Assembly (NCBI GenBank): GCA_950097015.1
Contig: CATNEN010000011.1
Location: forward strand, 310,001 to 374,000
From: Macrostomum hystrix
Taxonomy: Eukaryota > Animalia > Platyhelminthes
DNA length: 64,000 nucleotides
Direction of reading: 5' to 3'
Below are positions 15,813 to 63,377 of this stretch, piece by piece. Both the position numbers and the translations under genes were made by a program. Each line of letters starts with the position of its first letter. Positions within the stretch are counted from its first letter, which is position 1. A model generated the notes under the pieces. It made no database searches. It was not told the origin of the DNA and saw nothing but the letters and a program-made list of their open reading frames with translations.

Positions 15813-16463
<651 letters not shown>

Positions 16464-39396: not shown

Positions 39397-41788
39397 TGGA
39401 TTAATATGGATTAAGTTAATCAAGGCAAAGTGTTTAAAGTTGAGAGAAAATGTGTTAAACTTCAGTCTAATGTTTTGGTATCTCAGCTCAAAGTTTGAGC
39501 TGCTTTAGGCTCTGGTAATTTATGCTAAAAAGCACTGGCCTATAATCGCAGTGCAGCGCACATTTGTAATAAGAAAGCTACGGTGCTATGAGTAGATAAC
39601 AAACTCCACACGCTTCGCTCTGGTGGGTGGAGGTCAAAATGACAATGTTGAGCGCGACTCAACAATTGGGATTGCTGCCGGCTCTTGCGGGACACTTTCT
39701 AAGTTGTACCTCTGGTTTCTCCGTGTGCACTTTCTACTGAATGTAGCTCGTAAAGCAGAGGTGCAAGAAAAGTTATATTTCAATTCTTGACTTTTCTAAC
39801 GTTATGTTTTCCCTTTAACTTGTATTTTATGTGTGAATTTTTTATGCAGGTTGTTTTTTATAAAAAAATACATCAAAGACTCCAGTTAGGATGGAGTCTT
39901 CGAAGCTCGAGTACGAGTCTGAGTATTTTCCCCAGGATGAGTATTAGACTGAATATAAGACGAGTCTAATCGAATCTAACTGACGATATATTTCTTTGAG
40001 TCAGTGGTTTTGTGACGAAGCTGGTCCGGGCACAAAATGATCCGCAACTGAGTCTTCGCAGTCAGAGACGGACTTCCAAAAGACGAGCAATGAGGCTAGC
40101 AATATTGAACTTGTCAGAATAAGCCGTCGTTTATTTCCTTTATTTTTGACCGAATGGTCCACAATCAATCAGCAAAGTATTCTAGAAGTCAGTCAGCCTA
40201 TGGCTACGCTATAAGACAATTGTTTAGGCGTTCCCAGCAAGGTACGGTAAAAACAGAGGCTTTGGCGCAATGACTTTAAATAAGCCAGACAGAGAAGGGA
40301 AGGCCGCCAGTGTCACATGACACCGAGGCAAGCGAAGTGGGGGCAAGGCCTTAGCCGACTTAAAGGGCGCGATCGCGCGCGATTGGCTGAGAGGAAGAAA
40401 GGGCGGCGAAGCGTACAGCACATGGGGAAGGACTGGAACGCAGGGGCGGCCAACCCCCACGTCCTGAGCGGGGAAAGTCCTGAAACTGGTAAACAAGCTC
40501 ACAGAGGCAGCGCCAGAAGGTGAGAGTCCATTAAAGGCCAAGGGGGAGCGGGCAAGTTACAACGTCACAGTTTGACGTTTTTAAAGAGTATAGTGGAGGC
40601 TTTTGCATGCGTTTAAGCAACCCTGTGTAGTTTAGACATTATTTTACGGCACTTCCCTGCTAAAGTATTTTCGAACGCAATCTTTAAATTTGGTCTCAAA
40701 ATACAGCAATTTTATCTCGCCCTGGTTTGTCATGTAATCATCATAAGGCTCACAATTGCAGTGCTGTGACTGGACTGAGCATGGAACATAGTCAGTGGCC
40801 ATGCCGAATTCACAGAGTGCACAAAGCAGGCAGTAGAGGTTGGCTACTCATTCTGCGGAAACACAGCAAGTTCCTTGAGTCGGAGAAAATGAGCTTTCCG
40901 TCCCTCCCAGTTTTACAAACTGGGCCAATGGTCTGTGCTCTGTAAAAAACTTTAGCCATGCTACTGCAAACTGCATGGCATCTGACTAATCGAAGACGCA
41001 AAAGCGGGTACGATAGCAGGGTCCACGCTATAGTTTATAATATTCATTCCCATGAGCCCGGCCTGTTGTCTTCCAATGTCAGAGGTGATCTCCGCCAGCT
41101 GTTTTTCGGCTCAGTCTCGCTGTTAAGGCTGGAATTAGTTAAGTATGGCAAATTCTAGCTTTTTGGCCGCTGCGCCACCAAAAGTCTAGAGGAAGCAGAA
41201 TTCGCAATTTTGGCAAATAAGCCACAGGATAAAGCTGCTCGGCCACTAGTTGAAGACTGCGACTGAATAAGCTTACTCCCGAAGTCGATATTAAGTCAGC
41301 TTGCAGAAGCACAAATTAAGTAAACCAAGAGGCCCATGAAAAAATAATACGAACTGTGCACGTGTCTTCTCTTCAGCACATGAAAGCAAGGTCCAGGCTT
41401 TTCTTCCGTAAATTGTCGGTAAGCTTAATTTTGACTGTCTAGTGAATTGACAGATTTCAATCACGCTTCAATAATGTTTCGAGGCTGTTGTTAGATTTCA
41501 TCACATCTTTTGCTTTTTTCAAAGTTCTTGCTTTAAAAATTTTTCAATGTAGTCAGTTGGGCCTGACAGTATGACAGCACGACTACCGTGTCAAAGACGT
41601 TAGAATTTGGCAGTTTAAAAGCGGTTGGTTTTTGTGATTCAATTTAAGCGCTCGTACTTTGCGTCTTTCTCAGTTGATTTCAGCATTTAGTTATGCATTG
41701 AACACACTGAACGCTCTGGACGCAAATGAAGTAAATTAATTTCATTGTTCTTGCGCTTCCAGCGTTCTGAAGTGTCAAAAATCTAAGA

Positions 41789-42913
41789 ATGCTGCTGCTT
41801 CAACACTCAAGAAGGCGAAGGCTATTGCGTCCTAAATATGTTCTGGCCTTGGCGCTTGCTCTGTTCGCTAGTGTATATTTGATGCGTAAGTTCCATCAGT
41901 GCTGTGGTCTGGAGGTGCCCGTACTGTTTAAAACTTTAAGACGTGTTGACACATATTGGAAGCCGCCAAAGCAGCCAGTTACGGACGCATGTTACCATGA
42001 TGACTTGTTAATAAAGCTACTTCAGATGCCGAGCAGTGGAGTGCAAAAGCAGCAGCAATTTATTAGAGGATTTTACGCCACGCCCACATACTCAGTAGAT
42101 CTGCGTAACCTCACGTTATCGAGGGCCTGTGTCAATGCCCTGACGCCTGCTGACAACAACGCCTACGAAACCATAGACTCTAACTGTTTCACCAGATGGA
42201 TAGCTAAAGACGATATGAACAAAGTCTACGATGCACTGCAATGGTTATTGAGGAACTTCAGGTCACGTGGTCTGGAATGCTTTATGCTAGATGGTAGCCT
42301 AATTGGATCGTTACGCCACTTTGGATTGGTGCCGTGGGACGACGATTTGGACTTCGCGATTCGAGCGGATCAAAAAGCCGAAGTTCGACGGCTGTTTGAG
42401 GAGCTGGCCGAGGGTGCGTCACCGTACTTGTTTGTTGACCAAGAAGCAACCTTTGGACATTGGAAACTGGGATTTCTTTGTGTAGTCAACTCTGCAGCTG
42501 GGAAATCGTGCCGAGTTGCTGCCGATTTCTTCTTTTTTCGTCGGGCTGGTCGCTGGATCATTCGACCTGAGTGGCCCTTTCACTTTCCCGCCGAAGATAT
42601 TTATCCCCTTTCGGTGAGACCGTTTGGCCCACGTCTGCTTCTTCCATCGCCTCGGCGGCCCTTGCACTTTCTGCAGCGGCAATATCGTTCTGATATAATG
42701 ACACGATGCCTCTACCAGCCCCACTCTACAACGAACTGTTCCCATCCGGAGGTGGCTTGTCGAGCAGTCCAGCTGACAGGTAGGCACCCGTTTGTTGCGT
42801 CTGTAGTTTTACCTGCACCGCCCGCTATGATTCACCGAAGCCTGAATGTCACTGTCGAGCTTCTGGTTTGGAATGGAAAACTAATTTCCCTGTTTCTTCC
42901 GATTGATTCATAA
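41789..42913 (+). CDS. LicD/fukutin-family nucleotidyltransferase-fold protein, predicted type II membrane protein (374 aa, single ORF)
   Basis: N-terminal basic segment plus hydrophobic anchor (RRRRLLRPKYVLALALALFASVYLM). LicD/FKTN motif CFMLDGSLIGSLRHFGLVPWDDDLDF; EDIYPLSVRPFG. Confidence 0.85.
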   Translation: MLLLQHSRRRRLLRPKYVLALALALFASVYLMRKFHQCCGLEVPVLFKTLRRVDTYWKPPKQPVTDACYHDDLLIKLLQMPSSGVQKQQQFIRGFYATPTYSVDLRNLTLSRACVNALTPADNNAYETIDSNCFTRWIAKDDMNKVYDALQWLLRNFRSRGLECFMLDGSLIGSLRHFGLVPWDDDLDFAIRADQKAEVRRLFEELAEGASPYLFVDQEATFGHWKLGFLCVVNSAAGKSCRVAADFFFFRRAGRWIIRPEWPFHFPAEDIYPLSVRPFGPRLLLPSPRRPLHFLQRQYRSDIMTRCLYQPHSTTNCSHPEVACRAVQLTGRHPFVASVVLPAPPAMIHRSLNVTVELLVWNGKLISLFLPIDS

Positions 42914-46485: not shown

Positions 46486-48414
46486 TCATAGTTCAGTCTT
46501 CTCTATTGAGGCTATATTGTCGTACGCACTGTGGCGTCCAGTATCAGTCTCCGCAGCAAACTTGCCTCCTGCCGCCGGTGATCGACCGCCGACGTGCAGT
46601 CGACTTGCCAGAAGACCCAGAGCACCGAGCAGCAGAACAAAGCCCAAGCAGCTGCACACAATAATGATGATTAGCAGGTGTTCGGAAGTTAAACCGCCTG
46701 ACATTATGGGCATCACAATTGGCGCAGTGGTTGTCATCATCATGGCGGGCTGTCGGTCCAGCTCTGCCAGCATCTTGATTTCCTGCTCACAGAAGCGCTG
46801 TCCAAACAGTGTTGCGCTAATGTTCTGGATCACAGATGCCGAGCTTATACGATAAAGCCCCAGTGCTAGAAACTCCGACATCTGCCGGGACCTCTTCGGA
46901 TCGTAGCAGGCGTTGTTCGGCCAGAGCGTGTTATTCAGGTAATTTCGGCAGAGAGGATCGCAGCCTGTTCTAGAGAAGCATTTTTTACCGATCATTTCGT
47001 TAAGAACTTGAGACGGCATAGTTCCACTGCGCATTGCAGTAATGTTGCAGTCGCCTTCAACGTGCGGCGTGATGCCACTTTGTAACCAGCAAGTATTGAT
47101 GCCAGAAACGGCTATGCATTGGCCTAGCTTAGCGCTAGTGGTTTGGCTCACGTTGTTGGGATAGTAGGAAAGAAACGACAAGCACATTTCGTCGCTGGTG
47201 CTTTCTCCAAAGAAGATGGTCGAGTTGCTTCTAAGTGAACTAAAGTAGCATTCAGTCTTCACCTCATCACCTTTTAGGTACGCGATTGGTGGATCAAAGG
47301 TTACCATCTGTGGTGAATTATAGTCGTAAACCTGCAGCGGAGACAGATCTTTGATCAGTGTTCCATTCCGCCATAGTGAAATTCGCCCCTTAATACCATA
47401 GGTGTGCATATGGATTGTTGCAGACGTAATGTACCGCGTGCCTGCGTGATAGCGTTCTGTGCATACGGAAGGACAAGTATGGTTGAAGCTAACCAGTGGC
47501 TGACGAGGTGGAATGACGAGGTTTCCCTCGCCGTACATCAGTGTTCCCTGGTCATAAGGTCGAAGATTTGGCGTAAAGAAAATTGAAAAGCCAGAGGAAT
47601 CCGTGTAGCCAGAGACCATTGCCGGGTTGTTCCAATGAAGCTCGAGCAGAGCATATCTGTATCCTTCGCCACCGATTCGAAACCCTGCGTTGCTGCTGAA
47701 GCACTCACCTTCGACTCCGAAACCCCATAGATTCAGCATCTCCGTACAATTTGCACGACCCATAAAGCATTCTTGTGGACCGTCGAACAAGGCCTGCTCT
47801 GGTTTCGATTCACAAGCGTACATTATCATGTGGTGCATAATGTTCGTGTTGACAATGATAGGCAGCGATCCGATCATATGAACAGGTGTGGCGGTGTTGT
47901 TCAATTCAAACGCTTGGCAAATGTACGTTGTCTCTTTTGCGGGAACTGGGGTGTTTTTGCTTAGGGTGAAGTTCCTCACTGTCACATTAGCACCCTTCAT
48001 GGCAGGACAGTTAAAAGCTTTAGGACATACGGTCCAGAAATTTTTGCAAGTCGTTGAGTCGAGCGGACAGATTCCAGGATGGGACAGGCCAGTGGTTCTC
48101 GCTGGAGTGGCTCCGACGATCCACACGCAGTCGGGATCTCCGAGCTCTTGACCATTCGTGAGCCCGTCGCCGTCAGAGTCTTTGCGGCATAGTTCTGGTG
48201 TCCATTTTAGGCCGGCGGCCGCGAAATCCACTCCGAACGGGTTCTTGGCGTTTGCGCCAAGAGGGCTCTGGTGTCCGACCCCGGCCCAGATGGCGCCAAC
48301 CTCGCACGGGTTCGGGACCCTGTTTCCGTTCGGAATCCTCGATTGGTATGATGTGCGCGCCTGTGAGCAGCTTAGCAGTGCGGCTAGAACCGACAGGACA
48401 AAAAGTGTGCCCAT
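46486..48414 (-). CDS. Paralogue A: signal peptide - temptin-like domain - copper type II ascorbate-dependent monooxygenase (DBH/MOXD1-like core, no DOMON) - Cys-rich domain - TM (642 aa)
   Basis: Temptin-like IPNG..V.NPC...W.GVGH...NPFG.DF...W...LC..DSDGDGLTNGQELGDP.CVW. Copper ligands IMHHMIMY, LELHWNNP, IHMH and GESTSDEMC. Hydrophobic C-terminal helix. Confidence 0.9.
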   Translation of the reverse strand: MGTLFVLSVLAALLSCSQARTSYQSRIPNGNRVPNPCEVGAIWAGVGHQSPLGANAKNPFGVDFAAAGLKWTPELCRKDSDGDGLTNGQELGDPDCVWIVGATPARTTGLSHPGICPLDSTTCKNFWTVCPKAFNCPAMKGANVTVRNFTLSKNTPVPAKETTYICQAFELNNTATPVHMIGSLPIIVNTNIMHHMIMYACESKPEQALFDGPQECFMGRANCTEMLNLWGFGVEGECFSSNAGFRIGGEGYRYALLELHWNNPAMVSGYTDSSGFSIFFTPNLRPYDQGTLMYGEGNLVIPPRQPLVSFNHTCPSVCTERYHAGTRYITSATIHMHTYGIKGRISLWRNGTLIKDLSPLQVYDYNSPQMVTFDPPIAYLKGDEVKTECYFSSLRSNSTIFFGESTSDEMCLSFLSYYPNNVSQTTSAKLGQCIAVSGINTCWLQSGITPHVEGDCNITAMRSGTMPSQVLNEMIGKKCFSRTGCDPLCRNYLNNTLWPNNACYDPKRSRQMSEFLALGLYRISSASVIQNISATLFGQRFCEQEIKMLAELDRQPAMMMTTTAPIVMPIMSGGLTSEHLLIIIIVCSCLGFVLLLGALGLLASRLHVGGRSPAAGGKFAAETDTGRHSAYDNIASIEKTEL

Positions 48415-50696
48415 GTTTTTTATGTCTTCTTGAATGCGTCAGGTTATCCAAATTTTTTTAGAAGCTAAGACGAGCTTCACTGTGCTTTTATAAGTATTTG
48501 TTAGCAGATTTCATTGGTTGGTTTGAATGACGTTTTCCACTCTGTCTTTTTTCTGGAGTGCAAGTTCACCGTGAAAGTATAATTTACTAATTCAGTTTCT
48601 ACCACCGCACTGAAAAAAAGTTCGAAGAGATCCCTAGGTGATTTTAATAAGCAAATAAGCTAAGGGTTACCATAAGAGCCCGTATTTAGCGGAGTTATTG
48701 CAACGTGACAGGTCCTGACAAGTATTTTCAGCACGTCGATTTCTCTCCGTGTCCCACTTCTTCCTGCAGAATGCAACCTGCTCAGGTGCAACCTGCTCTG
48801 GCCAAAGAGTCTAAAGCAATGCAAGTTGCATCTCGATGTAAGCATATGCCATACATGTACATGTACAAGCAGGAAAGACCTTTACACCTGCCCAACCAGG
48901 CTATATGCTAACCTGGCTAGCAATAATCCTACGGGCAAACATAGTTGGGCAAACGAACCACAACCCGCGAATGCATTGAAACCAACTTATGAGAATTAAG
49001 CAATAATATTTTTCGCTGAAACATGAGTTCGCTTTTCAAGTACTGGTAGTGCCTTAGGAAAAGTTTTTTGATTCTATCGACGCTTAAGTGTCAAATATTG
49101 ATTCTAACGCGAGCCGAATAGTTGAACATGCGATATGCACCTAAAATCACGCATATTAAATCAGTGCAAAATGAACGCATTAAAGTAGGTCTACACCTGT
49201 ATAAACCGCATGAATCATTGGATATTTATAGGCTGCTCTTGGCAGCTTATTTGGCTCTGCTGCTGCATCATGTGACAGCGTGTAATTAAAGCTCACATTG
49301 TTTTCGCAGTAAACAATTTCATTTCATTCCAGAGTCTTCTAGAGAACTTAGAATATCGTTTCTGTTGTCTCTACCCATCAGGAGTTCTCATGGAAAACAC
49401 TGTCATGTGAACTCGAAGGTCTGGAGTGCCTTATCTCAAACCCCCAGCACTCATTCGCCTGCCCAAGAGAGCTGTTGATGCACTGAGCTTTAATAAAACG
49501 CATTGCACAATGATAATTGTTAAGGCGTGCGATTGTGGCCGCTAATGACAAGGCTCTTTTTCCGCAGTATCTTTTCCTTTTCAGCCAGCCCACTTTTTGT
49601 TGCCTTTCATTTGAAGTTTCTTGGAAAGTTTAGTTTAGAAAAGAGAGAAAACAGTTTAAGAGATAACGAAATATGACATACGACTGTTTTTAGACTCCAA
49701 GAGCCTGGAAATTTTCTGGACAATAAAATGCAACACATTATAATAAACCCTTCTTCATTTTCACATCACTAGCCACTAAAAGATGCGAGGGTTAAACGAA
49801 CTTTAATGTCTATTGTGTAGGTTTAGGCTACAAAATCTGCTCTACAGAGAGCAGACGACTGTAGACGAGAAACGTAGGATTGACGATTTTAGAGAGCAAC
49901 TTTGAGCTTATACTCATATTTAATCAAAACTAAAAGTTTTGAATTGCAATGATGCAGCCGAGTTTTGATTATGTGCCGTCCTAAAAGTGCTTTAATTTGG
50001 CAACTGTGCGATAATACACTGTCAAATTGCTAATTAATTGCTGTAAGCATGCGTCGCTTAAGAAAGTTTCGGACAACTATAAAAATGTAGATTTGAAATA
50101 CGACTGTAGAATAAAATAGGAAACTGAAAACACTATCGACAATGCGAGCATATAGTGTTAAGCAGTGGAAATACATAGCTTCGTCTGCGGCGAATCTGCT
50201 GTTGCTGACCAGGGGGAGAAAAGGGACAGATTGATTGCGATTGAGGGAAAATAAATTAAAGCTTCGGCCAAGACAAAATACACAAAAACAATTGCCAATA
50301 TCCATTTTTAAGAGTGAAGGATAGGAGGAGAAAATTAAAAGAGCTACCTTCCTATAAATCGCATTCAAATACATCACACACTCGAATAATAGCACTGAGA
50401 CTATTTTTGTGACTTCAATAGTCTCAGTATTTTCACTGAAAAGTGTCGACCCGTTTCGAGTATCTCCATTTATATTAAACTGGGCCTGTAAATAATTTTT
50501 GTGCTGCGGCGTCTTTCTTGCTACCAGTTGCACATCTGCATGCTATACTACTGGAGGTGATTGTGACTGACACACAAAATAAGAAAGCTTTGAACGTAAA
50601 GTTACCTGAAATCAAGAGCAGCGGTAAAGTCCCGCTATAGATCAAACTGTGGGACCATTTTAAGTGAAAGCAAAAAAGACATGAGTTGACATGTTG

Positions 50697-51602
50697 TCAT
50701 GGAGAAAATGGAGAAAAGAATGCAAAAGTATATACCGGAGAACTGTGGGGCACAAAGCCGACTTTATTGTTTGAGTAATCAAATTCTGGCTCTGAAATCG
50801 GCTTTTCAACCTTGAAAAAGGCAGGAGGTCCGCCAGAAGACATGCTACGGTCGTCAGTCATTCTGTAGCAGGCCAAGCGTCTGCGCAAAATGGTGGCCAG
50901 CAAATGAAGAGCAACCAGCATCACGATGAAGCCAAGACAGCTGCATACGATAACGATGATTAGCAGGTGCTCCGACTGTAGGCTTGCTGGGTCGGGATGA
51001 GCGAGAGCACGATATGGAGGCATGGTTGGAGGTTGAAGTGGAGGCTTGGCTGGAGTCTGAGTTAAAGGCTTCGGGGGAGACTTTGTTGAAGATGCATTGG
51101 AAGGAAGGATGGAGGATTTTGATTTTGAACTAGCAGGTGGAGCCAGTGCAGTTGTAGTAGTAGTGGTAGTTGGTAGAGCTGCCGTTGGCTTTGGTAAATT
51201 CGGACATACATTCCAAGCATTCGTGCACCTGGTGGAGTAGATCGGGCAGATTCCTGGATGGGACAGGCCAGTTGTTCTAGCTGCAATGGCTCCCTTCTTC
51301 CACACTCAGTCAGGATCACCGAGCTCCTGACCATTCGTTAGTCCGTCACCATCTGAGTCCATTAGGCACAGCCCCGCTGTCCACCTGTGACCAGCAGCCG
51401 CAAAGTCGAGTCCCAAGGGATTCTTGGCGTTGTAACCGTAGGGACTCTGGTGACCAACTCCTGCCCAGATGGCTCCAGGCAGACATGGGTCAGGCACTTG
51501 GTTTCCGTTAGGTATATATATCTGGTACTCATAATAGGCTTGAGCAATCCAGATCTGTGCTGCAGCGGCTATAAAGATGGTCACAAGTTTAAAATGAGTC
51601 AT
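50697..51602 (-). pseudogene. Paralogue B: signal peptide - temptin-like domain - S/T/P stalk - TM, interrupted by an in-frame TGA (51306-51308) at a conserved Cys; pseudogene or recoded gene
   Basis: Track ORFs 51306-51608 and 50697-51305 are contiguous in one frame: ...ELGDPD*VWKKGAIAARTTGLSHPGICP... The other three paralogues have TGC (Cys) at this codon. Confidence 0.7.
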
Positions 51603-51611
51603 ATTCAAATT

Positions 51612-51870
51612 AGAGCGTAGAGCGTTTTTACGACCTGAAGGTTGGGGGCTCGATTCCAGACTCTACGGAAATGAATTTGTGTCGTTTAGCAAGAACGTAA
51701 CTCTCCCAGCTGTTAAACCAAGCATTAGCTGGGGTAATTGAGGGTAGGTGTGGCGCCCCCCAGTACATGGACAAACAGCGTACGCAGCCTTCAGATGCGC
51801 CGCGCAATAGCTGCGGCTGTGATATCGGCTGCTTATCTGGTCTAATTAGGGTAGGTGCAATTAATTATAA
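51612..51870 (+). mobile_element. 5'-truncated SINE family A copy immediately upstream of paralogue B
   Basis: Aligns by eye to the reverse complement of 8700-9033 (GCAGCCTTCAGATGCGCCGCGCA(A/T)TAGCTGCGGCTGTG shared). Confidence 0.85.
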
Positions 51871-52831
51871 ATTTATAAATGGTCCCTTTTATTAAACCAT
51901 GCATGCGTATAGCAAATACTTTTTTCTGAGGTTACCTTGCCCAAATACTGACTGGTTGAAAGGTGCAAGCGAAGTATTTCAAAATCGATCCGAGAGTTTG
52001 AGAAACCAGGTTTCAATACCGTTTTTCGGTATCTGGCAAACGGTTTGACTGGCCAGAAAAATTCCCTAATAAATAATCCCCACTGGCAATGCAGCCCAGC
52101 ATGTACTGATGACGGTCAGGAAACGGTGCACGTTCTAACGACTGGAAAAGTCGTTTAAAAGTAAAAGTCCTCTAAGGGTGGTAATTGTTAAGTGCTCAGA
52201 CTTGTAACCAAGAAGTCCGGAGTTCGAATATCAGTCCAAGGGAAACAATTCAAGTCCATAAGCAGGATGCTAGATACCAGATTTTTAAGTTCATCCTGCT
52301 GAGAAATATATACTGACACTGTCTGGGTAAAAACTGTGTGTAGCGTTAATTGGTCAAGGTGTAGTTTCTACCTGTATAATGTTTATATTATAAGGATAAA
52401 ACGGTGCACGGGTAAACACAAAAAGGCTAAACGCTCCAGCTTTACAAGTACAAAGGTACACAAAAATTCATATTTGGTTTTTTAATTTACTGCTCTTTCT
52501 GAAGATTTTTATTTCTATCTGAAGTAAAATGCTAAGTAAAGCTCACAAACGTGTTCCTTTATTTTGAACGTTGTAATCAGATTCCTTAATTCGTATTCAA
52601 TGGGAGCTATATACTCGTATAAGTAGCTCGTATGATTACACCACTTATTAGTGGAATTATACTGTTGATTATGGTATTGTATTAAGATATATATATTTAT
52701 TTAATCGTAAATTGTAATATTTTGTATTGCTAAACACATGTAGAAAAAATATCAAGAAATTAGGCTAATCTGTAATTGGACGCAGTTAAAATCTTGTTAA
52801 GCAAAAGGACAAGACGTGTTGATTTCATTGC

Positions 52832-53578
52832 TTATACGACAGTACTGTAGGGCAAACGGAAATTTCTGCGATCAGGGACATACGCTTGATTCTCTGTGCC
52901 GGCGTAGAGAGGCTCGGGCTCTGGGCTAGATTTAACACTGATTTTATAGCAGGCCAAGCGACTGTGCAGGAAGTTGGCCAACAAGTGAAGAGCCACCAGC
53001 ATCAGGATGAAGCCCAGACATGCGCATATGATGGTGATGATCAGTACCTGATCGGACTGCCGGTTCGAAGAGGCACGAGAAAAGCCAAGCGATGAAGCCT
53101 GGGTGGAGGTCTGGGAGAGAGGAACCGAAACCGAGGTATTGGAGTTTTTTGGCGGTGCTAGAGTGGGATTTGATAAGTTCGGACACGCGTTCCAAGCGTT
53201 AGAGCACGTTGTTGAGTAGATAGGACAGATTCCAGGATGAGACAGGCCCGTTGTCCTAGCTGGTGTGGCTCCGACCATCCAAACGCATGAGGGATCACCC
53301 AGCTCTTGACCGTTTGTGAGGCCGTCATTGTCAGAGTCCTTTTGACACAAAGCAGTTGTCCATCTGTTGCCGGTAGATTTGAAGTCCTGTCCGAAGGGAT
53401 TCAAAGCATTGGAGCCATATGTACTCTGGTGGCCGACTCCAGTCCAAACGGCTCCTGGCTGGCACGGGTCTGGTACTTGGTTTCCGTTTGGAATGCGGGA
53501 CTGGAAGCTAAAGCTCGCCTGGGCTACGCTGATTAGCGCTGTTACGGCGAAGAGAATCGACAGTTTAAAGATAGCCAT
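52832..53578 (-). CDS. Paralogue C: signal peptide - temptin-like domain - short S/T-rich stalk - TM - tail; no monooxygenase domain
   Basis: Likely start MAIFKLSILFAVTALISVAQA. Intact temptin-like domain with DSDNDGLTNGQELGDPSCVW. TM VLIITIICACLGFILMLVALHLLA. Confidence 0.85.
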   Translation of the reverse strand: MAIFKLSILFAVTALISVAQASFSFQSRIPNGNQVPDPCQPGAVWTGVGHQSTYGSNALNPFGQDFKSTGNRWTTALCQKDSDNDGLTNGQELGDPSCVWMVGATPARTTGLSHPGICPIYSTTCSNAWNACPNLSNPTLAPPKNSNTSVSVPLSQTSTQASSLGFSRASSNRQSDQVLIITIICACLGFILMLVALHLLANFLHSRLACYKISVKSSPEPEPLYAGTENQAYVPDRRNFRLPYSTVV

Positions 53579-54159
53579 GCCTAGATTCTTTTTCGCTTTT
53601 CTATGCTTGAAGTGTGGCACTCGAAGTCTTCTTGATTCCTATCTGAAATCCTGACTAAGCTCATGATATTACTTTCTTGAAATTCCTCTGGCTTTATACG
53701 AGCGTACTTTAGCGTATTAATGCCCGAATAAGTGGCTGACATACTTTCACAGATCGCCAGCGAACGGTGTTTCTAAATATAGGCGAAAGTTTCAGCGAGA
53801 TGTGCTTTCCGACGATCAAATATTTGCACTACCCATGACGACCGTAGCTGTACTAGAAGAAATTTCTGCTCCCACAGTTCTCAACTCTGTACGGGAGACG
53901 GAATTGGCTCTGTATGACTAATTCACAGTGGGATGCACAGGCGCACTTTACCCAAGTGAGTGCTGTTTGCAATGGAAAATGTGAAAGCGACGACAGGTGT
54001 GTCATGCTCCTTTTTGCGCTTCCATCACATAGACCTGAAGACTCTGTGCAGAGCTTATTCAAGAGCGACTCTTTTTGTGGGTATTATTGAGGTCGAAACT
54101 GTAGCTTCTAATGTATACTATTATAGTATATAAATGTTGTATATGTATATATTGATTAG

Positions 54160-54960
54160 CTTTGCACCACAGGTCCTCCGCACCGCCTGGTCGGCTTAGA
54201 CGGGACTGGCTGAGCCGGAAGGCGCGCACTGAACGAACATCGAGCTGTCCACGACGGGTAGTCTGCGAATGCCAATAAGCGCTGGACAATCTTGGCGACC
54301 ATGCCTTGTCCTGCAACCGTGTCATCGAGCGACATCGCCAGCAGGACGAGCTTAACACCCGGTGCTTTACTCTCGTAAAGGCACACAAGGACTGATTTGG
54401 CTGATTTTCCAACTGCACGCCGACTGCTGCCCGGCACTATGGGGCTTCCAGACCGCCATAGGCATAACGTTGTGCGCGCTTGCCGTTTCTGTGGCGAGGG
54501 CGACGGCATCCCACCCGCTGATCTACTGCCCCGCCCGCCGCTCGCTGACTTCTCACCGCTGCCGCCTCTGGGGCTCAAACCAGGAGCTCGCGGTGGTTTT
54601 TGCCAGCTAGCCTGCCGTGCTGGACTTCGTCGGGAAGGCGGGCATCCTACGATGAAGAATAAGCTTAACCCCGCGACGTGCGAGACGGTTTTCCCTGCGG
54701 TGCTCGATCCGGTCGGCCTGGCGGCACGTGACCGTAGGGAATTCGACAGATTCACGTTTGCAGCGGCAGTTCATCGGTCGAGTGAGGGCCGCCGATGGCC
54801 TGGGACGCGACATGCATTCACACCAGGGCCTCAATTCATCTGGCTGCTTCCGACGCCGCCACCCGTGCTCCTGCTGCCGTGGCAGAGGTGCACAAGGCCG
54901 TCAGATACGCTGACCAGGGATGCCCAGCGCATCCTCGAACAGCTTTGGGGCTTGATGTCG
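54160..54960 (+). mobile_element. Possible decayed 3' fragment of an RLE-type (CRE-like) non-LTR retrotransposon
   Basis: Scattered peptides LDNLGDHALSC, HRHNVVR, PPADLL and RAGLRRE in different frames resemble the zinc-knuckle/restriction-like endonuclease region. Heavily disrupted. Confidence 0.35.
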
Positions 54961-55811
54961 AATTGGCTAAATAATTTTGATTATTTAATCCATCATTTAT
55001 TCGAATATTATACAAATATTCTTTTTTTGTCTAAGTTTTCTAAGCAAAGCATTAGTTTTCATATTACTATTCGAGCTATAGAATATTAATACGAAATCAT
55101 AGAAGTATTATAAGCCTAACAGCCCTGGCTAAACCCATAGCCAAATCCATAGCCAAAGCCATAGCTATGATTCTCAAGGGGGTTGGTAGGCCCAGTGGGT
55201 TAGTGTTTTAGAACTCCTAATCTTGAGGTCGGGAAATCAGTCGGTGCCCTTGAGTAAGAAGCAATAGCTGCGGCTGTCACTGGCTATACGAGCTACACCT
55301 GGACCAGCTAGGTTAGAGTCACTCCTACCTTTCATCTTCTGTAATTATCAATATTTGATGTCGAATTGAGAACACAAAAAGGTTTTTACTGCGGACTCAA
55401 GCCAGCTGGCTCAGGTTAGAGGCACTTGGGTCTGACGCACTGCTGTTGCTCGGTATCCAACGAAACAGCGCTCTGTTTATTTCACTCTCAGAAAAGCCCC
55501 TTTGTCACGTCGACCAACCACTCTGCCAGAGGTACTTTACCGATACCAAGTAGTCAGACTTTTGCATGCAGCGTGAGAGTGAAGCTAGACAAGCTTTGCC
55601 TGAATCTAAATTTGTCCAATACAAACTAATGAAGAGCACACATTTTCTTGGATTCTTAATTAAATTTTGCTCTTGCCAACATGCTTAAGAAAACAAATAT
55701 CAAGATAGACAAGAAAGAAAGAAAGAAAGACAAGATAAAAGGGTATAATAAAGCAAAGAAGGATTAAAACAGAATAGTTCTCGTGGGAATCGGAAAATAG
55801 AGAGTTGCACA

Positions 55812-57761
55812 ATGAACTCTATAGTTTTTGTCATTCTAGTGGCAGCCTTTGCGCTGCAGACTGTACACGGATATTCGTCCTACAAGTCAAGAATTCCGAA
55901 CGGTGACAGAGTGCCGAACCCGTGCCAAGCTGGAACCATCTGGGCCGGAGTCGGACACCAGAGCTCTGTTGGGGCTGACACGAGGAACCCCTTCGGACTG
56001 GACTTCAAAGTTGCCGGCTCCAAGTGGACAACAGAACTGTGCCGGAAGGACTCGGATGGCGACGGCCTAACGAACGGCGAGGAGCTCGGAGATCCCGACT
56101 GCGTTTGGACAGTTGGGGCCACTCCCGCGAGGACAACTGGCCTGTCTCACCCTGGAATCTGTCCTCTAGACTCGACAAAATGCAAGAACGCATGGACAGT
56201 GTGCCCCAAAGCATTCAGTTGTCCTTCTATGAATGATCCCGGTGTGTATGTGAGAAACTTTACCATCAACAAGACCACGGTTCCGGCAAAGGAGACTACG
56301 TACATCTGCCAAGCATTCGAGCTGAACGGCACCGCCACCCCTGTTCACATGATTGGATCTCGACCCATCATCGATAACAACAACATCATGCATCACATGA
56401 TCATGTACGCCTGCGACACTAAACCAAACCAGACGTTCTTTGACGCACCTCAAGAGTGCTTCATGGGACGAGCGAATTGCAACGAAATTCTTAACCTCTG
56501 GGCTTTCGGTATTGATGGCGAATGCTTCAACAACAACACTGGATACCGCATTGGAGGCGAAGGCTACCGATATGCGATGCTTGAGCTTCACTGGAACAAT
56601 CCAGCAAAAGTGAGCACCTACACGGACTCATCTGGCCTCTCTCTGTACTACACTCCCAATTTGCGGAAGTACGATCAGGGAACAGTGATGTATGGCGAAG
56701 TCAATCTTGTGCTACCGCCACGTCAGCAGCTAGTTAATTATAACCACACATGTCCATCGGTGTGCACGGAGCGCTATCACACTGAGACCAGGTACATAAC
56801 ATCAGCTGGTATCCACATGCATGGCTATGGTGTGCAGGGTCGCATCTCCCTCTGGCGAAATGGAACATTCGTCCAGGATCTGCATCCGCTGCAGGCATAC
56901 GATTACAACTCACCCAAGATGAACCCGTTCGATCCGCCAGTGGAGTATCGCAGAGGCGACGAAGTAAAGACCGAATGCTATTTCAGTACACTGAGATCAA
57001 ACACCTCGGTTTTCTTCGGAGAAGGGACTAGCGACGAAATGTGCTTCTCGTTCCTTTCTTACTATCCCAACAATGTCAGCAAATCCACAGACGCCAAGCT
57101 TGGTCGTTGCATTGGGGTGTCGGGCATAAATCTTTGCTGGTTAAACAGCAATGCCAGGCCTCAAATTGAGCAGGAGTGCAACATTACAGACATGATCAGT
57201 GGAAAGATTCCCAACCAAGTATCAGCCGATATGAGTGCGAACGGATGCTTTTCCAATACCGGCTGCAGTGCCGCGTGCAGGAACTATCTGAACAACACGC
57301 TTTGGCCATCGAATGCCTGCTACGATCCGAACAGGTCACGCCAGATGGCGGAAATTCTAGCGATGGGATTCCAGACCAGCCAGAATGTGAGCCAGATGAT
57401 TGTCAAGACGCTCTACGGACAGAGGTTCTGTCAGCAGGAGGTCACTATGCTTGCAGAAATGGCCCGTCAGGCTTCAGCACTCTCGGCTGCTACCACTCCA
57501 GCTACTGTCCAAGTGGCGGCCCCGACTGGGTTGAAGTCCGAGCACCTGCTGATCATCATTATTGTGTGCAGCTGCTTGGGCTTCATAATCATATTGGCCA
57601 TTCTGGGCCTCATAGCCAGCAAGACTGCCGGAAGGGACTTTCCGAAGCCCACAGCTGGAGCGGACAAGACTCAGTCGATCGTAGGAGCGCAGAGCGACAA
57701 TAAAGCCTACCTTTACAATGAGTACGACAATAACTCGGCTGCGCACAAGTCCCAGCTCTGA
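55812..57761 (+). CDS. Paralogue D: signal peptide - temptin-like domain - copper type II monooxygenase core (no DOMON) - Cys-rich domain - TM (649 aa)
   Basis: Colinear with paralogue A. Copper ligands IMHHMIMY, LELHWNNP, IHMH and GEGTSDEMC are all present. Confidence 0.9.
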   Translation: MNSIVFVILVAAFALQTVHGYSSYKSRIPNGDRVPNPCQAGTIWAGVGHQSSVGADTRNPFGLDFKVAGSKWTTELCRKDSDGDGLTNGEELGDPDCVWTVGATPARTTGLSHPGICPLDSTKCKNAWTVCPKAFSCPSMNDPGVYVRNFTINKTTVPAKETTYICQAFELNGTATPVHMIGSRPIIDNNNIMHHMIMYACDTKPNQTFFDAPQECFMGRANCNEILNLWAFGIDGECFNNNTGYRIGGEGYRYAMLELHWNNPAKVSTYTDSSGLSLYYTPNLRKYDQGTVMYGEVNLVLPPRQQLVNYNHTCPSVCTERYHTETRYITSAGIHMHGYGVQGRISLWRNGTFVQDLHPLQAYDYNSPKMNPFDPPVEYRRGDEVKTECYFSTLRSNTSVFFGEGTSDEMCFSFLSYYPNNVSKSTDAKLGRCIGVSGINLCWLNSNARPQIEQECNITDMISGKIPNQVSADMSANGCFSNTGCSAACRNYLNNTLWPSNACYDPNRSRQMAEILAMGFQTSQNVSQMIVKTLYGQRFCQQEVTMLAEMARQASALSAATTPATVQVAAPTGLKSEHLLIIIIVCSCLGFIIILAILGLIASKTAGRDFPKPTAGADKTQSIVGAQSDNKAYLYNEYDNNSAAHKSQL

Positions 57762-58984
57762 GGATGCGGATTTCGGTGACGATTGAAGCGAGCGTGGTTT
57801 TTTATCAAACATATTTTAGCAGGAAAATTATAGCACAGATTGGCACTGGCTTGCAAATCTGTGTCACTGCTACTTGCTGCTCTTTTTTAGTGTTAGTTTT
57901 TTTCTCGCTCTAAAACTATTTATGAGCATTAGGAATATTAGGACTATATTTAGAACACATTTTATTTAACGCGTGCATCTCTTTAAATTAGACTGAGTAC
58001 GAGCTAGCAGTAAGTAGCAGAAACAATGGATAAAAAAACAGAAAAAACATTTGTGTAACTTTAAACTTTAATTAATATACTAAGTTTCAGATCTACATTA
58101 CAAACTCTCGCTAAAATATTATTACGTTTTTATTCCGCTCACTTCTCTTTGTGTATATGCAGCTGTGTTTAGAACTTAACTTTAGATTTAAATGTATTAT
58201 CATATTCTTACAATCTGCTAAAATTTTAATATTTACGAGTATTAACTTCTACCGGTTCCAGAGAGCTTAAAAAGTTTACACCAGAAAGGAATCATAAGTC
58301 TAAATATACTGTTACGCACGCGGCCTATTTAAAAATGTAGAATTTCTTAAATATATAATTAAAGCTTATTCACTTTGGTGTGTAAGTATGATGCACTTTT
58401 TTAATTAATGAATCGCGTGCATCTTTTGAAAGTTTTCAAATGTAGTTTGATCCGCTGGTCTACTGTCTTTTATACTAATGTTAAAATTTGCAACTCTAAT
58501 ATTTTAATGAATGATTGAATGGTCATTGTAAAGAAGTCGATACTACCTATACTATTATGATAGGATAGTACTAATGTTCCGGTTTATAAACGTAGGTAGT
58601 CTAAAAAGTTCTGTGATTTATAAAAGAAAATTAAGGACAGCTGCTAACAAAAAATTTGAATTTTGTTCCTCAAAGCTATAAAAAGCTTTCCAGATAATTT
58701 TGGCTGACAAAGCACGATAGAAATAATTGTTAAATATTTAATAATATAATTAAAGCGGATGCAGATAAAACGTTACATTTTAGTATTAAGCAAAGTGGCA
58801 AACTTGCAAACAGAAAAATTATGAAAACTCAAAATATTTAACGTGCACTGATCTTGTGCCCATTTGTTATATCCATCTCGGGCTTCAGTCGAAACTCGCA
58901 GCAAAGATATACAATGCACGGCAATTTTATAAAAGTTGCTCAATTAATCTGACAGATCTTGGGATTCCGAGTGTGTTCATTTCA

Positions 58985-59285
58985 GGATGGGATCAGTATC
59001 CTTAGGATGGGATTAGTGTCTAATTTAGGATGGGATCAGTGTCCAGTTTATGATGAGAGCAGTTTGGTATGGGATCAGTGTCCAGTTAATGATGAGAGCA
59101 GTTTGGGATGGGATCAGTGTCCAGTTAATGATGAGAGCAGTTTGGGATGGGATCAGTGTCCAGTTAATGATGAGAGCAGTTTGGGATGGGATCAGTGTCC
59201 AGTTAACGATGAGAGCAGTTTAGGATGGGATCAGTTTAGGATGGATCAGTGTCCAGTTTATGATGAGAGCAGTTTGGGATGGGAT
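58985..59285. repeat. 39-bp satellite, left part (GGGATGGGATCAGTGTCCAGTTAATGATGAGAGCAGTTT)
   Basis: Directly visible tandem units. Confidence 0.95.
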
Positions 59286-61908
59286 CTTGACTTACTTGAC
59301 TTAGCGGCAGGGGGCCTCCATGACGGACGCAGCGAGGAGGCGGCTGGTGCCGCCCATATCGCTAACCCCTGGCAGCCAGACGGCCTCCAGCGAGGCGCGC
59401 CTGACTTGCGCCAGTATGGCCAGGGCCCTCTTGGCCTTTGTGGTGATGTGTGGGGTCCAGTTAAGCCTATGGTCTAGCACGAGACCAAGGCACCGGACCT
59501 GCTTTTCCATGGCAATATTCTTGCCATGGTCCAGAGCAGTTTGCTGGTAAACATAACCGCGACGGTCTTGGACTCAGAGAGTCGGAGCCCGCATTGGTCC
59601 GCCCAGCGCACCGCCCTGTTGATAAAGCCCTGAATGAGGTCCCTGGTGGTTTCCGCCGAGGGGCCCGCGCAGATGGCGGTCACATCGTCGGCATATCCCA
59701 CCTTCAGGACTGGGTCTGGACGAGTGCTTTTCAGCAGCTCATCCATGACGAGATTCCACAGCAGTGGGGTGAGGACGCCACCTTGGGGCCCTCCTTTTAG
59801 GACAGGTGCCGAGAGCACCCTGCCTTCGAGGTGGGCCACCACGTGGCGATTCCGGATCATGTACATGACCCAGCGAACGAGGTGGGGGTGAGTGGCCCTG
59901 GAAACCAGGGCCTTCTCAAAGGCTTCGAAAACAACGTTATCGAAGGCCCCCTCAATATCAAGGAAGACAGCCAGGGCAAAACCGCTGCCCAGTACTGCCT
60001 TCTCTAGAGTCTCCACGATGCAGTGGAGGGCGCTCTCCGTGGACCGGCCAGCCCGAAAGGCGTGCTGGTTTGGCGAGAGCGGGGCCCGCCCTAGCTCTAC
60101 AGTAAGAAGGCGCCAGAGCACCAGTCTTTCCATGAGCTTGAGGCAGGTGGAAGTCAAACTTATCGGGCGATAAGACTTGACCGAGCGATAGTCGCCTTTG
60201 GCGGGCTTCGGGATGAAGACGACCCGGGCTTCGTGCCACAGCGCTGGTACGTAGCCCAGCACGATGCAGGCCCGTAGAAGCCATTTTTGACCGCTTCATG
60301 CAAAAAGGCCGGATAAATACCATCTGGCCCAGGTGCTTTGAAAGGGTTGAATGACTTTGCCGCGCGAACGATGCGGTCATTCGTGACGAGTGACTGAGCC
60401 AGGCCCTGACCTCCACGTGAGTGGTCGTCTGGGCCAAAGTGCGCCGGTACACTCGGGAAGAAATGCCCTAGCATAAGCTCGAGCGTTTCCTCCGGGCGCT
60501 CCGTGATCGAGCCGTCTGGCTTTTTGATCGATGAGAGCTTGGAGAAGCGGTCGTTGGTGAGCGCCTTTACCACGCGGGCCGTGGGCCGCGAGCCCTCAAG
60601 CCCTTCGCAGTATTGTCGCCATTTGTCCGCTTTTGCCCTTCTGACCCGGCCCTTAAACTCATGGATGGCGCGAGTATAGGCCTCTTTGTCATCAGGGTCG
60701 TGCGAGGTTTTCAGCTTCCTCTGGAGAGCCTTAGCTCGGCGTCTCAGGACTCCGAGCTCGGGGTTCCACCAGGGGGCCGATTTTTTGCCTTTGTAGGCTT
60801 TGAGCGGGCAAGCCATTTCGTAGGCCTCTGTGATGGCGCCGCCCAGCAGGGCAGCCACTCCATCTAGGTCCTGCGTGGTTGCCATGGCCATGGAGGGGTC
60901 GGAATCCCGAAGGCCCTCATGCAGCTTTTGGCTGAACGCGGGCCAGTCGGTGTTTCTGACATTACGCCTCCAAATAGGCTTTTGCTTCTTATCGGGGGTA
61001 CCGATGTTGAAGCGAATGAAACGATGGTCCGAGAGCGAGCTTTCGGTCTCCCATACCTCCCACCCCAGCACCCTTGGGAGGATGCCGGGTGAGGCCAGGG
61101 TGACGTCAAGCACCTCAGCCCACCGCCCATTGTCGAAAGTGGGCGTGTTGCCCACATTACAGAAGTTGAGAGGCGTGCCGCTGACGTAGGCCAGGAGCTC
61201 TTCGCCGCGGTCATTGATTTTTGAGCTACCCCAGTGGGTGTGATGCGAGTTTGCATCTCCCGCGAGGAGCAGCTCGAAGTTACGTGCCCTGGCGAAATCA
61301 CAGAGGGCGACGAGGGTATCGCTGACCACGGGGGCGTCGCCTGCCAGGTAGGCGGATGCCACGAGGGTCAACTTGTTAGGCACAATGTGTGCAGATTGGA
61401 TGACGCAGATGTCCCCGTTAGAGAGATCGGGTCTCATCCACGCATTTAAGGCTTTTGTGGCATAGATCAGTGATCTAGGGCGGACAGAGTCTGCCATGCA
61501 GAAGCAGTCATAGCCAGCAGGAATGTTGCTTGGCTTGTTTTTTGATAACCAGGGCTCCTGCACAAGTACAAGGCCCGGCATCATGCGCTCTGTCGTGCGC
61601 ATCAGATTTACTGATGCTGCCACGCAGTGCTGGGTGTTAACTTGCAGACATGATATTCCGGGGATCATCATGCAGGCAGAGGTCTACTTGGAGGGGGACT
61701 CAGCCAGAAGGCGGTCCTCCTCCTCCAGGTCGATGTCGGTAGCCATGGGCTCCTCCGTGCCCAGGCCCCGAGCCAGAGGCGGGAACTCGACGGGGTCAGC
61801 CGCCCAGTCCCCACCCCCGGCCCCGAGCCCAGGCCCAGAGTCGCCCTCAACCGGAGCCGACACCGCTCCCTGGGCCGTGGGAGGGGCGCTCGAAGGGCCC
61901 TGCTCGAT
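59286..61908 (-). mobile_element. Non-LTR retrotransposon (APE + RT, LOA-clade-like), 5'-truncated, frameshifted and internally deleted
   Basis: APE motifs LVLVQEPW, GDANSHH..WG, LDVTLA, SDH (60160-61671). RT motifs YRPISLTS, QHAFRAGRSTESAL, FLDIEGAFD, GPQGGVLTPLLW, GYADDV (59474-60262). 3' tail (TAAGTCAAG)x2. TSD GGGATGGGAT at 59276-59285 and 61909-61918. Confidence 0.92.
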
Positions 61909-62645
61909 GGGATGGGATCAGTGTGCACTTAATGATGAGAGCAGTTTGGGATGGGATCAGTGTCCAGTTAACGATGAGAGCAGTTTGGGATGGGATCAGT
62001 GTCCAGTTAATGATGAGAGCAGTTTGGGATGGGATCAGTGTCCAGTTAATGATGAGAGCAGTTCGGGATGGGATCAGTGTCCAGTTAATGATGAGAGCAG
62101 TTTGGGATGGGATCAGTGTCCAGTTAATGATGAGAGCAGTTTGGTATGGATCAGTGTCCAGTTTATGATGGGATTCGTTTAGGATGGATCAGTGTCCAGT
62201 TTAGGATGGGATCAGTTTAGGATGGGATCAGTGTCCAGTTTAGGATGGGGTCAGTGTCCAGTTTATGATGAGATCAGTTTAGGATGGGATCAGTTTAGGA
62301 TGGGATCCGTGTACAGTTTATGATGGGATCAGTTTAGGATGGGATCAGTTTAGGATGGGATCAGTTTAGGATGGGATCAGTTTAGGATGGGATCAGTGTC
62401 CAGTTTAGGATGGGGTCAGTGTCCAGTTTATGATGAGATCAGTTTAGGATGGGATCAGTTTAGGATGGGATCCGTGTACAGTTTATGATGGGATCAGTTT
62501 AGGATGGGATCAGTGTCCAGTTTAGGATGGAATCAGTGTCCAGCTTATGATGGGATCAATCTAGGATCGGATCAGTGTCGAGTTTATGATGAGATCAGTT
62601 TAGGATAAGATCAGTATCCAGTTAAGCATGGGATCAGAGTGGGAT
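61909..62645. repeat. 39-bp satellite, right part, grading into 23-bp and 16-bp units
   Basis: 39-mers to ~62160, then mixtures of GGGATCAGTGTCCAGTTTAGGAT and GGGATCAGTTTAGGAT. Confidence 0.95.
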
Positions 62646-62757
62646 CAATCTCAGATTCAAATTCAAGACCTGGATGGAATGGGACAGTCGCAGGAAATTG
62701 ATCGGAAGTATGTACCAGCTGTGATCGCATATCAGAAGTAGCGCTAAAGCACACAAT

Positions 62758-63192
62758 TCAAGCAAACTTCTCCATAGCTGACTGCAGTTTCACTGGCATG
62801 AGGACCAGCATTTCCTTCAGCAAGCCCAGCTCAGGCGACATGACCGCGGCCGCGTCGGGAACCCGATCGCAGTAGTCGCTCACCTGGCGATAATTGGACT
62901 CCGCTCGGCGCAGGTTGGCAAGCCGGCGATCCTTCGAAGCTTCGGGTAGGCGAGCGGCTACTCGGCCAGCGTGGAACAGGGCCAGCAGCACCGGCCTGGT
63001 GTCCACCGCCTCAAGTCGGTCAGGCAGGCAGGACTGCGGTGCTGGCAGGCGGAAACTGTCGACGAACGCGTCGAACTGGTTGATCGCGTCGCGGCCAATG
63101 GCGTTGGCTTTGGCCACGGCTGCCGGCGATGGAGTCTGGCCCGCGGCGGCGCAGGACTCGAGCGCTGACAGCTTGATGTCCAGCAAGTCCAC
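62758..63192 (-). CDS. KIFBP: KIF-binding protein (KBP/KIAA1279), last coding exon only
   Basis: After acceptor CAG (63193-63195): VDLLDIKL...FVDSFR...RPVLLALFHAGR...YRQVSDYCDRVPDAA..ELGLLKEMLVLMPVKL, matching the KBP C-terminus as I recall it (RPAMLAKF...IVDYCEKHPEA...ELELSKEMVSLLPTKM). Confidence 0.8.
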   Translation of the reverse strand: MDLLDIKLSALESCAAAGQTPSPAAVAKANAIGRDAINQFDAFVDSFRLPAPQSCLPDRLEAVDTRPVLLALFHAGRVAARLPEASKDRRLANLRRAESNYRQVSDYCDRVPDAAAVMSPELGLLKEMLVLMPVKLQSAMEKFA

Positions 63193-63377
63193 CTGGTGCG
63201 AGAGGGAGAGAAGAACGGAGGCCGGGATTTGCAGATTCATGCAGCTTGGATGGGGGAGGACTGTAGATTGTAGAGGACTGTAGACTGTAGAGGACTGTAC
63301 ACTTGGCGGGGAACTACAGGAGGCTGACATTGTAGAAGTGGAGACTGAAAGATACGTCGAATGAAAGGATGGTGGGA

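Follow-up and report, generated by a model that had tools for sequence, protein, structure and literature searches.

The closest described relative of the genes analysed here is the 'Temptin/mono-oxygenase hybrid' of Takahashi et al. (2009), in which a temptin domain replaces DOMON and which was taken as a lophotrochozoan novelty (PMC2762978). No substrate or function for this hybrid was found in the literature searched. Mollusc studies of pheromones, biomineralisation and host-parasite responses refer to temptin itself as a 'calcium-binding EGF-like' protein, and DOMON carries heme b in CYBDOM proteins and is also reported on ferric reductases. Here we examine four temptin genes (A to D) in a 64,000-nucleotide stretch of the flatworm Macrostomum hystrix (assembly GCA_950097015.1, contig CATNEN010000011.1, positions 310,001 to 374,000 of the forward strand), hereafter the window. 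The original prediction had put them forward as an undescribed system pairing enzymes with decoys; the architecture belongs to a large spiralian family and has been in print since 2009.

On the joint explanation that we favour with moderate confidence, A and D would be hybrid enzymes, C a tethered copy of their temptin module and B a pseudogene, with temptin akin to secreted bacterial CxxCH proteins and possibly serving as a heme relay. The cluster itself reflects ordinary gene-family turnover, and the domain link matters more. What is new, as judged from sequence, is the connection between temptin and the bacterial CxxCH proteins, together with the occurrence of the hybrid outside lophotrochozoans.

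Temptin and secreted bacterial CxxCH proteins

All four paralogues lie at the places and on the strands first proposed, and each has a signal-like start, a Pfam Temptin_C domain (E 1e-28 to 1e-38) and a homologous transmembrane helix. Signal peptides were called from hydropathy and a fixed small residue eight positions before I-P-N, no dedicated predictor being used. A search with C matched a protein with a MYXO-CTERM tail (P0140) that has C-L-N-C-H where temptins have G-V-G-H. We scanned bacterial genomes with a pattern taken from the opposite end of the domain, without the CxxCH motif itself, and found CxxCH 39-60 residues upstream of the pattern in 58 of 60 matches, the remaining two being fragments. 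The matches come mostly from Myxococcota, and also from Planctomycetota and others. A profile built from bacterial sequences only matches A to D over the whole domain (E 1e-14 to 1e-19; hhalign 99.9%). These profile comparisons show the temptin domain to be homologous to the secreted bacterial CxxCH proteins.

The joint alignment places the motif precisely. In all 113 CxxCH forms its His falls on His49 (D numbering), its second Cys on Gly48 and its first Cys on Cys38. Forms without CxxCH keep His49 in 100 of 104 cases and have a second His, His113, in 86 of 104; at that site CxxCH forms mostly have Asn. Both His are present in 116 of the 117 animal enzymes aligned. CxxCH is absent from A to D, which read C-x10-H with Gly before the His. 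In forms with and without CxxCH alike, signal cleavage falls at a fixed point, 7 residues ahead of I-P-N. Bacterial homologues, like C and D, weakly match NCBIfam NF041762 ('GEGP diheme protein'; E 6e-6 to 2e-2, well short of its cut-off), and shape matches of the temptin model in the Atlas include Myxococcota clusters (TM 0.75). An Atlas feature search leaving out PF24784 returned nothing, and one with a bacterial query returned a single low-score cytochrome row (0.81, below the reliable range).

In exported bacterial proteins CxxCH is the heme-c attachment motif, so the bacterial homologues presumably bind heme c. The eukaryotic secretory pathway is not known to have heme-c attachment machinery; loss of the Cys would therefore be expected there, while the first His was kept and a second gained. 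It is on this pattern of residues that eukaryotic temptins may, tentatively, be thought to retain heme binding. Among their fusion partners are copper monooxygenases, ferric reductases (P0268, P0282) and lipid desaturases (P0234, P0239). No bacterial temptin lies next to a copper monooxygenase in the 60 loci scanned, except in the eukaryote-looking L023. This locus, on a contig labelled Brasilonema sp. CT11, has temptin and copper monooxygenase in exon-like pieces and looks like a eukaryotic contaminant of a cyanobacterial assembly; a 234-nt Shewanella locus (L016) is also eukaryote-like.

Copper monooxygenases A and D

In both A and D, Temptin_C, Cu2_monooxygen and Cu2_monoox_C score above curated Pfam cut-offs, and Pfam matched no DOMON domain in either. 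All six copper ligands are present in A and D, and likewise in 115 of the 117 family members aligned. As modelled by AlphaFold (pLDDT 88), D combines a loop-rich temptin domain with two beta domains, a helical domain rich in Cys and a transmembrane helix; clear structural matches to the model are PHM and DBH only, over the core region alone (Z 24-26). The three-domain architecture recurs in all of the best 120 homologues, including those of molluscs, Lingula, Owenia and Watersipora; a green alga, Myrmecia bisecta, has it too, as does a cluster that includes a protein of the haptophyte Diacronema lutheri. Judged by predicted architecture, both A and D are intact and encode type I membrane proteins of the temptin/copper-monooxygenase hybrid family. 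The anatomy and membrane anchoring originally assigned to them, with a full copper core in A and D and Ser/Thr/Pro stalks in B and C, hold up.

Residues around the active site point away from the familiar substrates. The Glu of the human DBH H-H-M-E motif is Ile in A and D and L/V/I across the family. The sites of rat PHM R240, N316 and Y318, which we take to be the residues holding the peptide carboxylate, are G/T, F/L and F in A and D and hydrophobic across the family; position 333 varies among family paralogues. Since these positions are hydrophobic, we infer a hydrophobic small-molecule substrate and not peptidyl-glycine. The substrate of A and D is thus probably not a glycine-extended peptide, and probably not a catecholamine.

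Membrane attachment differs within the family. Macrostomum-type proteins (9 of 117 sequences) have a true transmembrane helix and a cytosolic tail of 40-50 residues, and most non-flatworm members have a short hydrophobic tail resembling a glycosylphosphatidylinositol (GPI) signal, or no tail. Either type of anchor would place the enzyme in the lumen or on the cell surface. A, C and D all end in S/T-x-L/V, presumably a class I PDZ-type ending. The helix start SEHLL...CSCLGF is almost invariant in three species; the helix is homologous in all four paralogues as first proposed, but the common start SEHL does not extend to C, which has SDQV. Over 32 nt of the transmembrane coding region (46640-46671; ~57552-57583), A and D are identical, with synonymous sites elsewhere near saturation; local conversion or a transmembrane-based interaction may account for this.

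Short genes and turnover at the locus

Sequencing runs were compared over a 6-kb stretch covering B, C and the 5' 600 bases of A. Three runs (X2-X4), whose type is not on record and one of which was guessed as DNA, gave contigs over A, C and a repeat only, the pattern of an RNA run. The contigs are gapless and colinear over C (52674-53663, in all three runs) and over the 5' 600 bases of A. They are much deeper on A than on C, though depth is a measure that cannot rank genes. D is one open frame. The genes had been called apparently intronless, which agrees with these contigs and with the frame of D. B is not an open frame, being interrupted by a TGA at codon 99. No joints link the genes, which have separate contigs, and we rejected the idea that A uses B or C as alternative exons or shares an operon with them.

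The TGA of B (51308-51306) stands where 117 of 117 family members have Cys and is the only break in the 906-nt frame; in all computations B was read through with X at this codon. A contig of the DNA run X1 reads the stop identically, with zero differences over 47800-51750, and we rejected assembly error as its cause, though that run is possibly the source of the assembly. The invariant F61 is changed to L. No transcript-like contig covers B in the three RNA-pattern runs, bar a short cross-match from the transmembrane segment of A, and an Rfam search of 48400-55900 at E<=1 gave no match, the selenocysteine insertion sequence (SECIS) included. By its nonsense codon, its 5' repeat and the missing transcript-like contig, B is best read as a recent pseudogene, and we infer that the repeat silenced it before the stop arose. 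The repeat has a second copy in the window (~8737-9040), and its family, which has no tRNA or Rfam match, also occurs in Macrostomum lignano loci.

C is a different case. It has the PF24784 domain with its DSDxD loop and conserved Cys, and it retains the near-invariant temptin residues except three: two sites also altered in A, and a Cys at the deletion edge. Both short genes are without Cys137, and C keeps six extracellular Cys. Its predicted transmembrane helix and cytosolic tail set it apart from a soluble, unanchored protein. B and C are sisters in the tree (support 95-98), with a pairwise synonymous divergence (dS) of ~1.8 over the temptin domain, near saturation and so giving no precise date, a non-synonymous divergence (dN) of 0.16 and dN/dS of ~0.1. 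These values point to an old short form with a long history of purifying selection. By tree and alignment, B and C go back to a single old duplicate from which the enzyme core, lying between temptin domain and transmembrane helix, was cleanly lost. The stalks were rejected as out-of-frame remnants of that core, the local DNA scoring no better than shuffles. That the short genes might be unexpressed, decaying duplicates fits B and not C, a lineage-restricted membrane-anchored temptin that is intact, constrained and apparently transcribed. A search with C, of limited sensitivity, found no orthologue with transmembrane helix and tail elsewhere.

The same search found an independent, recent deletion copy of an A-type gene in M. 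lignano (L004:10001-10560, P0121), in which temptin is joined to the linker before the transmembrane helix at a 3-bp CCG microhomology and a frameshift lies inside the helix. We rejected it as an orthologue of B and C, since it falls within the A-type copies of that species (dS 0.2-0.3); it is also unlinked. The core was thus lost on at least two occasions, a pattern that a deletion-prone layout would explain as well as selection would.

Synteny separates the enzymes from the short genes. The nearest named proteins are those of M. lignano (63-77% identity), where an A-type gene on the minus strand and the D orthologue on the plus strand diverge, with the KIF-binding-protein gene next in line. 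The 4.8-kb stretch that separates the pair contains no temptin copy, hence no B or C. PHO4 and LicD, upstream in the window, adjoin two further copies on another M. lignano contig, and A-type and D-type genes also appear as transcript-sized contigs in one run of a likely third Macrostomum species. Temptin domains of M. lignano A-type and D-type genes (L001, L003, L005, L006) group by species and have a 98-nt exact tract in common, which suggests gene conversion. One M. lignano copy (P0006) is without most copper ligands and another (P0005) without one. Full-length A-type genes at L005:18347-20041 and L001:3235-5159 are annotated short or frameshifted near the transmembrane helix in the public assembly. 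The divergent A/D pair is kept in Macrostomum, and the locus is a birth-and-death cluster of a gene family. A conserved four-gene module, with enzymes paired to decoys, was rejected on the M. lignano synteny and the broken state of B.

No further temptin or monooxygenase copies were found within the 64-kb window (Table 1). GC-rich overlapping open reading frames between C and D (54156-55089) have no Pfam match and are probably a repeat remnant. Related tandem arrays (58970-59290 and 61900-62650) flank the retrotransposon remnant beyond D. Elsewhere lie an EF-hand exon (15813-16181), a proteasome-chaperone PSMD5-like exon (21869-22438), a protein kinase exon (26048-26602) and a DDE transposase fragment (35435-35866).

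Table 1. Features of the temptin locus and its neighbours, numbered from the first nucleotide of the window.
Feature	Position	Strand	Description
Gene A	46486-48414	-	642 residues, single open frame; signal peptide, temptin, copper type II monooxygenase core, Cys-rich helical domain, transmembrane helix, cytosolic tail ending T-E-L
Temptin domain of A	48022-48357	-	Residues 20-131; Pfam PF24784, E 5e-37
CuH and CuM domains of A	47146-47961	-	Residues 152-423; six copper ligands intact
Transmembrane helix of A	46606-46686	-	Conserved SEHLL...CSCLGF start
Gene B, pseudogene	50697-51602	-	Signal peptide, temptin domain with in-frame stop, 73-residue Ser/Thr/Pro stalk, transmembrane helix, tail
In-frame TGA of B	51306-51308	-	Codon 99, at site of invariant Cys97 (D numbering)
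High-copy short interspersed repeat	51618-51868		Ends ~16 nt before ATG of B; very high summed depth, hundreds of contigs
Gene C, intact	52832-53578	-	248 residues; signal peptide, temptin domain, 39-residue Ser/Thr/Pro stalk, transmembrane helix, tail ending T-V-V
Temptin domain of C	53180-53518	-	Pfam; structure modelled, without solved structural match
Gene D	55812-57761	+	649 residues, architecture as A, tail ending S-Q-L; orthologue of M. lignano Mlig028174 (77%)
Temptin domain of D	55872-56207	+	Residues 21-132; D-S-D-G-D-G calcium-type loop
His49 of D	55956-55958	+	Aligns with His of bacterial CxxCH motif
His113 of D	56148-56150	+	Second conserved His, typical of forms without CxxCH
CuH and CuM domains of D	56259-57071	+	Ligands H194, H195, H260 (CuH); H335, H337, M410 (CuM)
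Transmembrane helix of D	57537-57617	+	Conserved; AlphaFold model ~residues 576-605
PHO4 phosphate transporter exon	38890-39504	-	Synteny marker
LicD-family open reading frame	41771-42913	+	Synteny marker
KIF-binding-protein (KBP) last exon	62758-63195	-	Synteny marker
Non-long-terminal-repeat (non-LTR) retrotransposon remnant	59474-61683	-	Endonuclease and reverse transcriptase; between D and KBP gene

Candidate mechanism and related systems

We propose that each of A and D, with two bound coppers, O2 and an external reductant, would add a hydroxyl group to a small and probably hydrophobic substrate, either on the cell surface or within the secretory lumen. The temptin domain appears to occupy the DOMON slot and is predicted to bind Ca2+ through its DxDxDG loop. 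With more reserve, it may hold a non-covalent heme through His49 and His113 or through the fixed N-terminal amine, and this heme could, no less tentatively, pass electrons to the copper centre. C would be a membrane-tethered free copy of the module. Eukaryotic temptin might then descend from, or be a cousin of, a heme-c domain secreted by bacteria; on entry into the eukaryotic secretory pathway it would have lost covalent attachment while keeping heme non-covalently, and would have become an electron-relay module for copper monooxygenases and some ferric reductases, a proposal we rate somewhat short of evenly balanced.

We give an even chance to the alternative that the domain no longer binds heme and is a binding or scaffold module stabilised by Ca2+ and disulfides (the 'glue' view of the literature), its His being structural or Cu/Zn-binding and A and D being reduced directly by ascorbate, which DBH and PHM use, PHM without such an N-terminal domain. 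Several observations favour it or otherwise weigh against the explanation we prefer. CxxCH is lost in every eukaryote-type copy, and a tree built without the defining columns parts the two groups by a single split, so that Cys loss and gain of His113 count as one event and give no direction of transfer. No solved structure in the PDB, cytochromes included, matches the temptin model, a missing match that is itself uninformative. Temptin domains also have non-redox fusion partners (Hint modules in P0130, P0175, P0217 and P0274; Ig-like domains), some stand alone, and DBH's own DOMON binds no heme. The literature searched contained no paper tying temptin to heme, one genome paper co-mentioning temptin and 'haem'; primary papers on temptin structure and distribution may mention bacterial homologues. 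As to expression, the runs read as RNA by their pattern are of unrecorded type, and the stretch compared reached from the 5' part of A through C. Loss of heme sits less easily with the near-universal His49, in non-CxxCH forms and animal enzymes alike, with the cleavage site common to both groups and with the ferric-reductase fusions.

Other readings fare worse. That the short genes are decoys or co-receptors, selected to act on a signal made or modified by A and D, is unlikely: the age, constraint, apparent transcription and residue conservation of C are in its favour, as are the independent deletion copy of M. lignano and the unusually conserved transmembrane helix, but B is broken, the syntenic M. 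lignano locus is without a short gene, the short copy which that species does have is unlinked, of recent origin and frameshifted in its helix, and the search with C gave no other orthologue with helix and tail. It is more improbable still that A and D are the dopamine or tyramine beta-hydroxylases of the worm, or its peptide-amidating PHM. Their best PDB match is DBH (E 9e-28) and database names read 'DBH-like' or 'tyramine beta-hydroxylase-like', yet identity to DBH is only ~25%, DOMON is missing, the Glu and carboxylate-site residues are replaced, and the family is expanded, with many paralogues per genome. We consider it highly improbable that B is a working gene whose TGA is recoded, by selenocysteine or read-through. 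The stop is indeed a TGA at a Cys position in a frame otherwise unbroken; against this stand the empty Rfam search and missing transcript-like contig, the change at F61, the repeat abutting the ATG, the lack of any homologue with a stop or selenocysteine at that site, and the single substitution that separates TGC or TGT from TGA.

The pheromone role suggested for the cluster finds no support here. Hybrid enzymes are widely labelled DBH or TBH in databases without the supporting residues. Were heme bound, the snail pheromone temptin would have to be reinterpreted, it and C being free heme-binding copies, and a route would be suggested by which a copper monooxygenase with a membrane anchor could receive its electrons outside the cell, through an extracellular electron relay hitherto unrecognised for a large orphan copper monooxygenase family.

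Compared with described systems, A and D resemble the published hybrid family (PMC2762978) in signal peptide, temptin, PF01082, PF03712 and lack of DOMON, with 35-45% identity to mollusc, annelid, brachiopod and bryozoan members; the Macrostomum proteins differ in having a transmembrane helix and cytosolic tail where most others have a GPI-signal-like tail or none. With DBH, TBH, MOXD1 and PHM they have in common the two-domain core and six copper ligands, and they depart from these enzymes in carrying temptin for DOMON, another Cys-rich C-terminal domain and replaced PHM/DBH substrate residues. C shares domain, DSDxD calcium-type loop and cysteines with Aplysia and Biomphalaria temptin (PF24784); published temptins are small secreted proteins of attractant complexes, whereas C is membrane-tethered, with a stalk and cytosolic tail. 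The secreted bacterial CxxCH proteins, which Pfam labels Temptin_C, match the temptin domain in whole-domain homology, fixed mature N-terminus, acidic loop and a His at the same site, but they possess the Cys pair for covalent heme c, and at 113 most have Asn. Heme-binding DOMON, as in CYBDOM proteins, the cytochrome of cellobiose dehydrogenase and DOMON-ferric reductases, is like temptin an extracellular N-terminal module found on copper monooxygenases and ferric reductases; DOMON is a beta-sandwich and temptin a small loop-rich domain, and with folds unrelated the likeness is one of functional analogy only.

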